DNA from: Thalia democratica
Taxonomy: Eukaryota
NCBI GenBank assembly: GCA_965202585.1
Contig: OZ241829.1
Span: forward strand, 5,146,001 to 5,210,000
DNA: 64,000 nt
Direction: 5' to 3'
Shown piece after piece: positions 2,288 to 60,798 of this stretch; within the stretch, counting starts at the first letter, position 1; each line of letters starts with the position of its first letter. The position numbers and the translations under genes are program-made. Under the pieces are notes generated by a model that saw nothing but the letters and a program-made list of their open reading frames with translations, was not told the origin of the DNA and did not search any database.

Positions 2288-3137
2288 ATGACTTATGTTA
2301 AGTTGATAAAAGACGCTCAAGATTTCTTCGATCAGAACAAATGCTCTGACGCCATCCGATGCTGGGAGGAAGTTTTAAAACTGGGAAAGTCCCTAAACAG
2401 TGAAGGGTTTGGTCTTATGCTCAAGCCTTACATCAAAATGAAACAAGAATCATTGAGGCGTGTAAGATCTGGTAAGTTTCTTAAGTTTAGTTTAGTAAAA
2501 AAAAAACATATTTTTCTATATCTCAACTATACTGACGTTAAAATTTTAAACTCTAAACAATTTTGAATATTTTTAAAAATTTTGATATTCTTTTAACACT
2601 TAAAAACTATAAATATCTAAAGTCAGTGATTAGAAAACAAATATTATAATCAAAATTTAAAAGTATTTATTTGATTCAACAGGTGAAGATGATGAAGATA
2701 AACATAAGGAAGAAGTGGAACTCAGATGTAAAGAGATATTATACCACATTGATGACTACTTACTCAAAAACGAAAATCGTGTAGATCAGGCGACTTTCGA
2801 GAAGCTTTCAAGGCTCCGTGGCGAATGCTACTGTGATCTCTTCGAAGTAAAAGGCAATAGAAACACTATAGCGCGCATGTTTGGTTTTTACCTTGTGGTA
2901 AAATTTATTTGCTCTTTGCTTTATTTTATTGCTTGCAGGTCAATTCGCTTTCTTGGCAATACTTTGTCCCAGATTTGCTTGACCTTTTTTAATGCTTTTT
3001 GTCAAACTTCATCTTTTACAATAATCTATTGGCAAAAATTTTGTGCAAACTTCAAAAAGTTTTTCCAAACGTCAGAAGGAGAGCATTTGAAGGAAAACAT
3101 GCGCAAGATAGTAAATATAATCCATTTATTTGGATAA
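2288..3137 (+). CDS. T1: small TPR-like helical protein with C-terminal hydrophobic segment, 212 aa, 2 exons (2288-2471, 2683-3137)
   Basis: Donor TCT G|gtaag at 2472 and acceptor caacag|GT GAA at 2682 join two ORF-track pieces in frame (639 nt). KLIKDAQDFFDQNKCSDAIRCWEEVLKL resembles a TPR helix pair. The structure is the same in all 5 copies. The TPR assignment is by eye. Confidence 0.85.
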
Positions 3138-3813
3138 TTACTTTTTTTGTTCATTCTCGTAATATGTACTTAAACTAGAAATATTCTGTTTGTGCTTAAA
3201 AACAACTATGAATATTTTTTTTTTATTATTCTAAATAAACCTGTTAAATGATTTTTATTATGTTGTATTATTGTTTAGTCCAAACATGCTAAATCTTGGT
3301 TGAATAGACGATGAATTAGAAAAAAAAGTAATAAAAACGTCAAGTTTATCAAAATCTATAAAGCCATTGTGATATCTTTTTTTAATTCTAGTGTTTATCT
3401 AAAATATTATTTAAAAAAGTTCTGTTGAAACCAATTAAAATTATGCCACTTAAACGATAATGGTCATAAAGTTATACAAAATCTTAAAAAAACGCTCAAA
3501 ATAAAGATACCAAAGTAAAGTAACCAGTTAAAATCTATCTCTTACAGTATTATTCGCAATTGTTATAACTTCAGTCCAATCTTTAAAAAATTATTTACAC
3601 CTTAAAAATAATTTTTTTGTTCCTCAATATAAATAATCCTTAGTCATTTTGGTCGTAAATCTTTAAAAATCCGTTTTAAAATTAAAGAAAGTGATAGGCT
3701 TGCTAGACGACTTCTAAAAGAAAACAAAGTAAAACGTGATGAAGCGATTCGATGTGGTTGATTTCTAGAAAGTTTTACTAAAATTTATGTAATTTTTATG
3801 ATACAAATCAAAT

Positions 3814-3912
3814 CAGTGGTCGGCAACACGTGACCCGCATACAAACTGCGGTCCTCAAACAATAAATCTGCGGCCTGCGAGCATTTTGTTTATAGGGGGT
3901 GCTGCCGACGAA
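3814..3912. mobile_element. Truncated hAT-like DNA transposon terminal fragment (unit 1)
   Basis: Starts CAGTGGTCGGCAACACGTGACCCGC and contains repeated GCGGCC(C/T)GC motifs, as at hAT/Charlie-type element ends. No second end and no transposase seen. Confidence 0.55.
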
Positions 3913-56726: not shown

Positions 56727-56781
56727 TTATATAATTAAATAAATAAATATATATATTATATATATATTACTAGAAAAAAAT

Positions 56782-59700
56782 ATGGATAAACACCATCCGC
56801 AACATTGTTCTGATGCACATTATCAAAACCAACAACAAAACAGTGGTCAAGCACAAAAGAGAAGTGGTATGCTTGATGATAAAACCGCTAGTTGTAACTC
56901 AAAGAGAATTAAAAATGATTTACCTTCTCAACCTTTTGCAAGCTCTCAAAGTGGTCAAAGTTTTGATGACTACAACATAAACCTATCAAGCTCTGACAAT
57001 AGTTCAATTGACCAGCATCAAGTAGACATGATGCAACAAAATGTTCCCCAGTCGCGTGTTGTTCAACAGTCTCCTGCAAACTATCGACATGTGAACATCC
57101 CTGATCAAAATCAGCCTTATGTTTCGGATTTCCCTAGTGTTGACACTAACTACCAACTCAAACAAAATTACTTGCCTGATCAAAATCAAGCTGCTGTTTT
57201 GAAGCAGCAACAAAAATGTTTTGATGATTTCAACTACAGTCGTCAACAACACAACATACCAACTCAAAACCAAGTTCTTCATGCGACCTCTCAACAGCAA
57301 AGTGTTGTTTATGCTACAAACTATAGACACAAACATACAAACGTAGTTAGTAATCCGATGACGCAACAGCAAAACTTTCAGGGATATCATGATCCGGGAA
57401 ACAACTTTCAGAACTTCTCACAGAAGTATACGCATTCAACAAACCAGCAAAACCAGTTTAAAATAAAAGGAAATCATTCTCAGGGATATGACATCCAAAA
57501 CTTAAGTTTAAACGAATATATGTATCATCAGTCTAGTAAGTCAGATCCCCAGTCGGTTGGTAATTCACAACAACCAGTTTATCAGTCGATTGTTAACTCC
57601 CAACAACCAGTTCCCCATTCGATTGTTAACTCACAGCAACCAGTTCCTCATTCGATTGTTAACCCACAACAACCAGTTCCTCAGTCGATTGTTAACTCAG
57701 AAATACCAAGTCCTCAGTCGATTGTTAACTCACAACAACCAGTTTATCAGTCGATTGTTAACTTCCAGCAACCAGTTAGTCAATCGATTTTTAACTTCCA
57801 ACAACCAGCTAATCAGTTGATTGTTAACTTCCAGCAACCAATTTATCAGTCGATTGTTAACCCACAACAGCTTCTTTCAGCAACGAATAAAATGCTGAAC
57901 TTTGAAAAAGATCCTTCGTATAAATTACGAAACGATTTTGATCAGCACTACACAACTGGGAGGAGTATTTACAAGGATGATGTGCGAGAAATATTTACAG
58001 GTTATAAAAATATGTTTAAATATTTAAACGAAGTTAAAATCCGTAAAACTAAAAGTAAGCATATATAAACATATTTACATTTATTATTCGTTTTTAGGCT
58101 TTTTGATGATTATTTTTTTTTAATACCTATATTTATTTAAATTCTTTATTTTAGTTTCATAACTTATACTCTTACATTTGACAGTATACTTAGCATCAAA
58201 ACATTCATTTTAGTATGATTATACGTCTCGTATACTTAAAGGTTAGTCTAAGCTGAAAAAAGAATTTTTTTTTTGTTATTTTTATTTTTAAGTTTGCAAA
58301 TTTTATTTTTTTGATTCTTTTTTATTATTTTTGGTAAAATTAAAAAAAAAAAAATAATAAAAGATTTAAAATAATTTGCTGACCCATCTTTTGATCAGAT
58401 TTTTTTAAGCTCAGACTGATCTTTTAGTAGACTTTCCTGATATTATTAAAATGCGTTTCAAATCATAAAACTATATATTTTACCTTTTAAGTTTTTTAAT
58501 AAGCTTTTTGTACCGGAATTTTTATTTAAGTTACCCACATAAAAAATGGAGTTAAAGTAAGAGTGAAACATGTGGAATTCAGACAGTATAAATCCCACAT
58601 GGAAATTCATTGTGGAAAACACATTCCAATTGAAGTCTTAATGCACTGGAAAGCTATACACGATGAAGATAAGAACTTGGAAAGCAAAGGTTTATACAGA
58701 TACGTTTTAATATTTGTTTTTATATAACAAACTGTTCTAGCTACATAGGATAATACTATTACTATATATATTTTTGGTAGATTGCAATAAACAATATCTA
58801 GAGTATTTATTGACGTGTAGTCATAGCATTTTAAAAACATCAATTTGCTTTGGTTGTTTATTTAGTAGTTGATATTACAAATTTTTTCTAAAAGTCTGCT
58901 TGATGTACTGAACTTAATTACAATTTTAAAAAGTTTAGTTTCTACATTTCTTTAAATAAAAAGTTTTAAGATTATTATAAAGAAAACATTTTATAAAGTT
59001 TTTATTTTTTATTTCGACTATTTTTACTTCAAGTTAAAGATTTAAAAAGACTTATAAATAGTTTTCAAGTAGTGTTTCAATCCTAATAAGAGTAATTAAA
59101 AAAATGAAATGTGCTTATGTATTATAATATGAATTTTTTGTTTTCTTACTTTAAGATAGTTTTGCTATACTAAAAGAGCATAGGTTTTGTTAACGTGGTA
59201 AAAAAAAAACTATGCTGTTTTATATAAAAATTCTAGTAGCAATTTTTATTTTAGGCGTTGTTGAGATGTACGACTTTTTCGTAAAGGATCAGAAAAATTA
59301 TACGATAGTTACCGAAGAAAGTGAAGGATTTTATACTTTGAAAGAATTAGTAGAAAAACATGGTGTAATGAATAAAAATACTGCAAAAATTATATTCTTC
59401 AAGGTGTGTTAAGATTTATTACAATAAGTTTGTTTTATGCGAATAGTTTTTTGTTAGTCTTCTAAGTAGTATTTATTACCTTATTAAAAACTATATAATT
59501 TACAGCTTGGTATTCTTTAATTCCTTAAAAAAGCTAGTGAAAACCTGTAAGGGCTTATGTAAGTCAGGGCTCTAAAAATATTTTTTTAGTAAATTTAAAT
59601 ACTTTCCAAACTTCTACTAACATACAATAACCACTAATTGAATATTAACTTTTATATATCTCTCTTTTTGGTTTGAGTACTATTTTAACTAAGAAAAAAT

Positions 59701-60798
59701 AACAAATGTAAGCAAATCAAACAAATCCTTTTAATTTACAGTTGTGGTCTACCTTAAGAAAAATTCATCAACGAAAAGTTGTTTTGCGAAACATATCTGC
59801 TGAAAATATTTTGATTAACCCTATAACTGCAGAGACTAAATTCTCAAATTTTGATTGTGCTTCTCATTATCGCGTAAGTTTACATATACACAAATATAAG
59901 TTAAACATTTTCATTAATTATTATAATAAAGTATTTTATATATCTAATATTATTTTTAAGTTTAGTATGATTTTTATCAGTATTTTATTATAAAAACGCC
60001 TTTATAGTATTTGTTTTATTAATATACATTTGATGTAGTTTTTAGTTAAATAAAAAAATTTAAACTTAGGTATTTTTTTACTAAGTAAAATTTATTTCCT
60101 TAACTATTTTAATTAATAAATTTTTATCACGACAATTAATTTTTTTAATAAAAAATTCCAAGAAGTTTAATTTGGTCGTCCAGTATTTGAAGTTTGTATT
60201 AATAGTACGAAAAGTGTTTTAAACAAAACTAACAAAACTTGAAAAATTTACACTTTGCCTTTGCGGTTTACTTTTGTTGTATATTAGTTCAGAGAGTTAA
60301 AACTCATCATTAATCAGTAGTTTATTAACATACTGTTTTTTTTACTCAACTTAGTTTAAATAAACACCTTTAAATGTAGCCTTGGATCGCAAACCATTAT
60401 AGTGGACCCGAAGAAACTATCCCTTTGTCATTCAGGCGTACTCTGGACCCGAGAGCTGCCAACTCCCAGAATTGTTTAACAAAAACAAATTCTACGAGTA
60501 TGATTTGGATAGGTGGAGCATGGGACTGGTTCTCTATTTCATAGTTTTTGTTTGAATTACTTCAATTACTTTTTTACTTTTTTTTCCTCGTTATTTTTAT
60601 TTGTTTTTTAAGGTAGAGGGCAAACCTGCGTTCAACAGCAAAGAAGAGGTGATCAGTAAGGATCCTGAAGTATCGGAGGGCTCAAGGAATTTCGAGTCGT
60701 TCATCAGGAAACTTCTGAACAAGGACAAGAAAGAGAGGTTCACTCACGGACTCATAACTGGCGGGGTAAAAGCTCACCCTTGGTTTGAAGAAAAATAA
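56782..60798 (+). pseudogene. K4: Q/N-rich Pim-like pseudokinase gene with a frameshift in exon 5. Exons 56782-58000, 58531-58689, 59255-59403, 59742-59873, 60380-60543, 60613-60798
   Basis: Exon 5 is 164 nt rather than 165 (GAAACTATCCCTTTG vs GAAACTAAGCCCTTTG). The shifted frame stops at the exon 5/6 junction, removing most of the C-lobe. Confidence 0.8.
57550..57879 (+). repeat. 33-bp coding tandem repeat, 10 units
   Basis: 330 bp = 10 x 33. Confidence 0.95.

Follow-up and report, generated by a model that had tools for sequence, protein, structure and literature searches.

A tandem array pairing genes for a predicted divergent 14-3-3-like protein and a predicted glutamine/asparagine-rich pseudokinase in the Thalia democratica genome

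The window analyzed here is the whole 64,000-nt stretch C5:5146001-5210000 (contig OZ241829.1) of the 802-Mb Thalia democratica assembly. It carries tandem copies of two co-oriented genes, here called T and K, which encode a putative divergent 14-3-3-like protein and a glutamine/asparagine (Q/N)-rich predicted pseudokinase, respectively. The window is AT-rich, with a GC content of 23-35%. Direct-repeat families recur in it at a period of ~14.0-14.3 kb, with disturbed units at 5.9, 13.4, 16.4 and 18.3 kb, and a BLAST search of unit 2 against the window returned collinear T-spacer-K blocks with identities of 84-93%. Five T and four K copies lie inside the window, and the distance from the T ATG to the K ATG was 5767 bp in unit 1 and 5746 bp in unit 2. 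An initial annotation, made from the letters alone, had described a fixed, co-oriented T-K pair repeated in tandem every ~14 kb, with five T genes (203-212 aa), four K genes (~700 aa) and ATGs ~5.75 kb apart; repeat search, BLAST, gene models and exon models (212 or 203 aa for T, 701 aa for K2) all agreed with this description. The copies in the window are as follows.

2288-3137 (exons 2288-2471, 2683-3137), plus strand: T1, 14-3-3-like, 212 aa; splice sites read (GTAAGT..CAG) and exons translated
8055-12099 (exons 8055-9276, 9813-9971, 10539-10686, 11028-11159, 11681-11845, 11914-12099), plus strand: K1, broken; gene model
16336-17191 (exons 16336-16519, 16737-17191), plus strand: T2, 212 aa; gene model and match to a metatranscriptome contig
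22082-26222 (exons 22082-23396, 23933-24091, 24658-24806, 25153-25284, 25806-25970, 26037-26222), plus strand: K2, intact, 701 aa; gene model
30638-31503 (exons 30638-30821, 31076-31503), plus strand: T3, 203-aa variant; truncated unit that has lost its K
36616-37468 (exons 36616-36799, 37014-37468), plus strand: T4, 212 aa; gene model
40463-45154 (exon 1 ending at 42341, then 43087-43245, 43829-43977, 44268-44399, 44725-44889, 44969-45154), plus strand: K3, broken; placed by homology to the other K copies
50024-50863 (exons 50024-50207, 50436-50863), plus strand: T5, 203-aa variant; gene model
56782-60798 (exons 56782-58000, 58531-58689, 59255-59403, 59742-59873, 60380-60543, 60613-60798), plus strand: K4, broken; gene model

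Of the two-exon T genes, T1, T2 and T4 code for 212 aa, and T3 and T5 for 203 aa. The K gene consists of six exons separated by GT..AG introns, and K2 is the sole intact copy among the four in the window, with one terminal stop and canonical bases at every splice site. Specifically, K1 carries a 1-nt deletion in exon 3, which shifts its frame, and a G>A change at the exon-4 donor (ATAAGT). Homology of K3 starts at 40463, so that the first 73 nt and the normal ATG are gone; its frame opens at an internal ATG (40477), and exon 1 contains a frameshift inside an expanded repeat, as the 1865 nt from 40477 leave the wrong phase. In K4, exon 5 has lost 1 nt (164 vs 165 nt).

The initial annotation had taken 2288-60798 as the limits of the array, which proved too narrow. 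An assembly-wide search and the neighboring DNA showed that the array occupies C5:5146570-5275150 and thus continues to window-equivalent position ~129150. These ~129 kb hold 11 units with ten T copies, eight full K copies and one K fragment. Four of the eight full K copies are intact and four are broken. The majority of the T copies are intact, and two are truncated (177 and 196 aa). Four collinear segmental copies are dispersed at C5:4.83-4.87 Mb, on the 91-kb contig C155 and at C10:21.885 Mb; intact K genes with a longer exon 1 (899-955 aa) were found at C5:4.83 Mb and on C155. T-only and K-only units occur, together with every mix of intact and broken T and K, and the intactness of T is not paired with that of K within units. 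The array is young, lineage-specific and tandem, and the pseudogenized K genes and single-gene units bear out the birth-and-death turnover that had been proposed for it. In DNA runs of two organisms, A and B, T and K were both present at multi-copy depth, in contigs too short to inform on linkage.

Several profile and alignment searches point to T being a divergent 14-3-3-like protein. Twelve 14-3-3-like loci (L027-L038) were taken from the genome as a comparison set and their open reading frames (ORFs) extracted; their places include C1:93.7-94.8 Mb, C2:18.9-19.2 and 73.5-73.7 Mb, and C6:76.1 Mb. Alignment of the spliced T family with the 14-3-3-like ORFs of the genome by hhalign gave a probability of 84%, a P value of 7.7e-6 and a score of 43.2, pairing T residues 16-118 with 14-3-3 positions 21-139. 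The corresponding controls stayed far lower, at 19.6 or less in 40 column shuffles and 17.1 for a reversed alignment. Moreover, a hidden Markov model built from ten of the genome's own 14-3-3-like proteins matched every spliced T with 18-22 bits (P ~1e-8) over residues 15-117, and tblastn of T against several members of the family gave E values from 8e-5 to 7e-3. On the strength of the own-family profile and of hhalign with its clean shuffle controls, the homology of the N-terminal half is supported: the first ~120 aa of T would correspond to 14-3-3 helices A/B-E, and the match covers both T exons. The curated Pfam threshold, in contrast, does not support family membership of T. PF00244 reached only ~12 bits on T exon 2 alone (E 0.15-0.17), below the cut-off of 33.2 bits, and nothing in Pfam exceeded its threshold on this exon.

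Across the genome, PF00244 gave at least 158 matches, mostly single ORFs of 230-250 aa arranged in arrays, and the T loci are absent among the 150 matches listed. T, a variable putative sensor in the initial annotation, would thus be no orphan but one of a family for which this genome has 158 loci or more. The earlier label of a TPR-like protein fared better, in that 14-3-3 proteins belong to the TPR clan and the broad fold class was right; the likeness is specifically to 14-3-3, and TPR profiles were not matched by T exon 1 (TPR_16, E 0.076; TPR_11, E 0.17, both far under the cut-offs). The weak TPR similarity of T is better explained by 14-3-3 helices. Searches with T exon 2 beyond this family were unproductive. 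An exhaustive HMMER search of 1.84 billion representative sequences returned one borderline match (E 7.9e-4, in five short stretches) that was judged spurious, ESM Atlas gave no usable match, and genome searches revealed no distant paralogs of this exon.

In canonical 14-3-3 proteins, phosphopeptides are held by a Lys/Arg/Arg/Tyr cluster, of which the Arg and Tyr of the YYRYL motif are phosphate-binding residues. The canonical YYRYL, represented by locus L027, aligned with CYCDL in T by both hhalign and MAFFT, so that Arg and Tyr are lost. The divergent 14-3-3-like members examined also do not have the canonical YYRYL. T keeps conserved stretches of the family resembling LN.EER and K..E....C.E...L.D.YL.K, but differs from the family members examined, which are single ORFs, in having one intron, and from 14-3-3 proteins in having neither the phosphate-binding Arg nor Tyr and in a C-terminal half that is far more hydrophobic.

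This C-terminal half is harder to place. Six helices were predicted in T exon 2, consistent with helices D-I, and T as a whole is predicted to be all-helical. In MAFFT alignments the whole of exon 2 is collinear with full-length 14-3-3-like members, helices F-I included, with a single 9-residue gap. On its own, the C-terminal half gave no significant profile similarity. AlphaFold models of exon 2 had a mean predicted local distance difference test score (pLDDT) of 63.6 for the exon by itself and 59.7 when a mixed T/14-3-3 alignment was supplied, and the C-terminal four helices remained at 40-62 in both models. A Foldseek search of the exon 2 model against AFDB clusters and PDB gave a best E of ~1, with one 14-3-3 entry at rank 30. 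A tblastn search in all frames of the 14-3-3-like loci found no evidence that the T C-terminus arose through a frameshift of a 14-3-3-like gene.

T contains two hydrophobic segments (approximately residues 123-146 and 149-175), with a maximal 19-residue Kyte-Doolittle value of 1.6-2.2, compared with 0.85 in the canonical 14-3-3 of this genome. The second segment lies at the position of 14-3-3 helix G, which is naturally hydrophobic and reaches 1.89 in a family member without a hydrophobic tail. The description of T as a membrane-type protein is therefore unproven. Additionally, the hydrophobic segments are followed by a hydrophilic, mostly charged stretch of ~30 residues, which suggests that T is not a classical tail anchor. 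T may have the whole 14-3-3 fold, compact and greasy at its surface, or only half of the domain, followed by a membrane hairpin. Within the comparison set, L032 and L036 have strongly hydrophobic tails (Kyte-Doolittle 2.4-2.6) that resemble tail anchors.

The K protein has 700-950 aa and consists of a Q/N-rich N-terminus followed by a kinase-fold domain. In intact copies the N-terminal 370-650 aa contain ~25-32% Q+N and ~10-13% charged residues and include a variable 11-aa repeat. Prion-like composition is a fair description of this region, as the initial annotation had stated. The repeat is encoded at the following positions.

22740-23369, plus strand: 33-nt (11-aa) tandem repeat in K2 exon 1, found by repeat search
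8719-9249, 41060-~42200 and ~57540-57870, plus strand: the same 33-nt repeat in the other K copies, with a copy number that varies between K genes

Exons 3-6 of K2 matched the Pfam Pkinase profile (PF00069) in order, at profile positions 60-104, 110-148, 160-190 and 222-263 with 13-15 bits each. Simply added together, these come to ~55 bits, above the cut-off of 31.7 bits; no match was obtained with exon 2. Active kinases are recognized by the catalytic HRD aspartate, the DFG aspartate and a glycine-rich loop. All intact K copies have LRN at the HRD position and NFD at the DFG position, and their glycine loop is degenerate. Judged by these residues, K is a predicted pseudokinase that would not carry out canonical phosphotransfer, in line with the catalytically dead kinase fold proposed before; LRN and NFD occur in every copy. 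A Pim ancestry, in contrast, found no particular support. In PDB, K exon 5 was closest to MELK/MARK (E 0.002), and PIM-2 appeared second, at full length (E 0.0055), in a search with the fused exon 5-6 of a K paralog on C7; Aurora, PKC iota, PKA and a Plasmodium kinase had the same score, so that PIM-2 is one of many equally weak matches. PDB searches with K exons 2, 3, 4 and 6 singly gave no useful match, a profile built from exon 5-6 fragments, which shrank to 61 positions, matched nothing, and K exon 1 likewise had no match among 5.8 billion proteins in a word-index search. The beta3 lysine and the alpha-C glutamate seem to be kept in a Pim-like V.VKHV...IP.EV context, an assignment made by eye that we take as a lead only. 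K shares the kinase fold with the Pim/CAMK-group Ser/Thr kinases, but differs from them in the replacement of the catalytic Asp and the DFG Asp, in the degenerate glycine loop and in its Q/N-rich extension of 370-650 aa.

The paralog on C7, at 14.559 Mb (locus L024, C7:14554500-14564499, minus strand, ~4551-6932), is 43-50% identical to K, has HRN and NYD at the two motifs, and does not have the intron between exons 5 and 6. These features show that the family of dead kinases predates the array. Another divergent K, at C10:1.80 Mb, is solitary. No T-like or 14-3-3-like ORF was found around these older paralogs, within ~10 kb on each side at C10:1.80 Mb and within the 10-kb locus on C7. This within-genome check by sequence searches went against the expectation that the two genes stay linked, as both older K paralogs stand without T in the DNA examined.

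Selection was estimated from pairwise Nei-Gojobori ratios of the proportions of non-synonymous and synonymous differences (pN/pS). The ratio was 0.37-0.39 for the whole T protein, ~0.2 for residues 1-125, 0.47 for residues 126-164 and 0.76-0.79 for residues 165-182, where pS was raised too; for the kinase part of K it was 0.42. Both T and K are thus under purifying selection. In T residues 165-182, pN was 0.21-0.27 vs 0.02 in the N-terminal 125 aa, which agrees with the part of the initial annotation that called T hypervariable. However, the raised pS, a pN/pS below 1 and a compensated frameshift in the same patch take much of the force out of that term. Pairwise pN/pS does not support positive selection on the patch, which is relaxed and not demonstrably positively selected. 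The compensated frameshift was found in one T copy, in L012 (C5:5230001-5240000) at ~4646-4700, equivalent to window positions ~88646-88700. In this copy (exon 2, 88154-88604 extended) an extra thymine in a thymine run is followed ~30 nt on by a compensating loss, with the result that ~10 residues of the variable patch are rewritten and the frame is kept.

These values bear on whether the array is largely decaying, non-functional DNA with little or no expression, in which the apparent constraint would be an artefact of recent gene conversion. Such a state would account for K introns and T-K spacers that are as alike between units as the exons, and for the broken half of the K copies; in addition, a search for RNA runs of the organism returned none, and RNA evidence consists of one short contig matching T. 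This 236-nt contig, from a 2016 marine metatranscriptome, matched T2 at 16734-16945 with 97% identity. However, the match begins at the exon-2 acceptor, and the 24 letters upstream of it are unlike the intron, which is consistent with, although not proof of, a spliced T mRNA. Moreover, synonymous differences proportionally outweigh non-synonymous ones in both genes (for T, nd/sd of 894/566 and pN/pS of 0.39), the N-terminal domain of T stands at ~0.2, and all splice sites are kept in intact copies. We consider wholesale decay improbable.

The similarity between units is not uniform along their length. In a five-unit alignment, identity was 86-97% over 16250-26250, introns and spacer included, and 54-83% in the inter-unit spacer (14650-16250 and 26250-28850), with a sharp step at the block edges. 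This pattern bears the mark of gene conversion across the T-to-K block. A sharp drop at both ends might also be expected if the ~10-kb block were the cargo of a large mobile DNA element that inserted repeatedly, and dispersed copies on two chromosomes would fit that as well. Homology and collinearity nevertheless extend into the flanking inter-unit spacer, among the units and at the dispersed loci alike, if at greater divergence (74-79%). Searches of the unit revealed no transposase, integrase or terminal repeats, and both genes have introns. Mobile cargo is accordingly the least credible of the explanations considered here, and we give it almost no weight.

If T and K had evolved as partners, their genealogies might be expected to agree. 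A Mantel comparison of T and K distance matrices for nine loci gave r = -0.001 (p = 0.42); restricted to the array, it gave r = 0.24 (p = 0.20). T5 belongs to a distinct lineage that also includes the T of the unit at window-equivalent 113260; T5 and T10 group apart from the other T copies, and their K neighbors do not. Since the T and K genealogies are uncorrelated, the older K paralogs stand without T and the intactness of the two genes is unpaired, the adjacency of T and K is most likely passive co-duplication with concerted evolution, a reading that we hold with moderate confidence. The same observations (Mantel r of ~0, older K genes with no T nearby and unpaired intactness) speak against the sensor/adaptor or toxin-antidote module suggested by the initial annotation. 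Under passive co-duplication, a duplicated segment would happen to span both genes, and T and K would be co-amplified because one segment covers both. Unequal crossing-over would then generate units with T only, with K only or with K fragments, and gene conversion would keep units alike between the T promoter and the 3' end of K while the inter-unit spacer drifts. Purifying selection would retain T and K, presumably as non-catalytic adaptors or scaffolds. The data show the anatomy of the array, the homologies, the lesions and the selection estimates; we infer the adaptor roles, as we do the passive linkage.

A selfish origin, with the T-K unit as a toxin-antidote or drive cassette and cognate pairs that would spread through the array and replace one another, could draw on the high copy-number turnover, the pseudogenes and the dispersed copies. 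It is very improbable, as the Mantel results show no co-divergence of T and K within units, T-only and K-only units persist, pN/pS is below 1 everywhere (the variable patch included), and neither gene resembles known toxin or antidote families.

Several observations nevertheless weigh against purely passive linkage. The edges of the homogenized block lie ~100 bp upstream of the T ATG and just past the K stop, and the order of T and K is collinear in all four dispersed segmental copies; both would also fit selection on the pair. All linked T-K copies are descendants of one ancestral unit. Some of the K frameshifts could be assembly errors, which would leave more functional copies than counted here. 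Furthermore, the pairing is less arbitrary than that of random neighbors would be, by analogy with 14-3-3 proteins as classical binders of kinases and pseudokinases, for example PEAK3 (PMC10279700), and the re-identification of T as 14-3-3-like raises the prior for a functional T-K link.

Such a link could take the form of a working adaptor pair, in which T, possibly membrane-associated or dimeric, binds K and tethers or gates a scaffold or condensate. T would dimerize through its kept 14-3-3 N-terminal helices, its target would be the K pseudokinase domain or the Q/N-rich region, and amplification would raise the dosage or diversity of the module. The closest described analogue is PEAK3, a pseudokinase scaffold to which a 14-3-3 dimer is bound at a phospho-serine motif (PMC10279700, PMC10279719, PMC13089168). 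K and PEAK3 would share a layout of a long disordered N-terminus and a C-terminal pseudokinase domain together with a 14-3-3-type partner. Purifying selection on both genes, homogenization of the T-to-K block as a single piece and retention of the linkage in every dispersed copy also fit a working pair. The analogy has its limits. PEAK3 binds canonical 14-3-3 via a phospho-serine motif, and T is without the corresponding pocket; linkage or co-amplification of PEAK3 with 14-3-3 genes is not described in PMC10279700 and PMC10279719; and K has no sequence relationship to the PEAK kinases. The replacement of YYRYL by CYCDL, the decoupled genealogies, the absence of T from the older K paralogs and the half of the K copies that are broken beside intact T count against a working pair as well. 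We therefore regard it as possible and rather unlikely. The stronger form, in which a pocket-less, hydrophobic 14-3-3-like T is a dedicated tether or gate for a prion-like dead kinase and the module has been amplified and diversified as a unit, would amount to a signalling or condensate system not described before; it is doubtful.

With passive co-duplication as the preferred explanation, the array is most like ampliconic arrays under concerted evolution, with which it shares tandem units, products of unequal crossing-over, homogenizing gene conversion and frequent pseudogenes; it differs from them in that its unit holds two genes of different families. Tandem kinase-like amplification and divergent 14-3-3 paralogs are each already known in kind. 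Literature searches returned no described Pim-pseudokinase or 14-3-3-like expansion matching this genome, nor any account of a hydrophobic 14-3-3 derivative without the pocket whose gene is linked to, and co-amplified with, that of a prion-like pseudokinase. If T and K are only neighbors, the locus cleanly illustrates how a two-gene amplicon undergoes concerted evolution and birth-and-death turnover, and with T the 14-3-3-like expansion, unusually large and specific to this lineage, would gain a hydrophobic derivative of truncated function. If T and K cooperate, they would form the first genetically linked, co-amplified 14-3-3-type/pseudokinase module, and a natural system for the control of non-catalytic kinase scaffolds with prion-like tails. 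In either case, the re-identified T yields a testable hypothesis of dimerization through helices A-D, membrane association and K binding.

Additional features of the window are minor. A search with Rfam at gathering thresholds gave no match anywhere in the window, and no ORF of 110 aa or more was found in the T-K spacer.

17730-21129, no strand: T-to-K spacer of unit 2, with very high-copy interspersed repeats within
39669-40232, plus strand: GIY-YIG-type open frame, candidate Penelope-like retroelement fragment, recognized by eye from a YIGET..R..EH motif

The very high-copy repeats of the spacer lie at 17730-18129, 20130-20529 and 20930-21129. In two DNA runs, the summed contig depth of these bins was 15,000-290,000 vs ~250-1,200 in most adjacent bins. 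A direct repeat of ~280 nt also occurs twice per T-K spacer, 1.28 kb apart, at 5427-5678 and 6663-6940 and at equivalent positions in other units. The candidate Penelope-like fragment adjoins the truncated 5' end of K3 on its upstream side. Finally, an alternative frame is open through K exon 5 and the following intron into exon 6 (25699-26076, and also at 995-1396 on the minus strand of L005); with 125-133 aa in two copies, it is probably coincidental.

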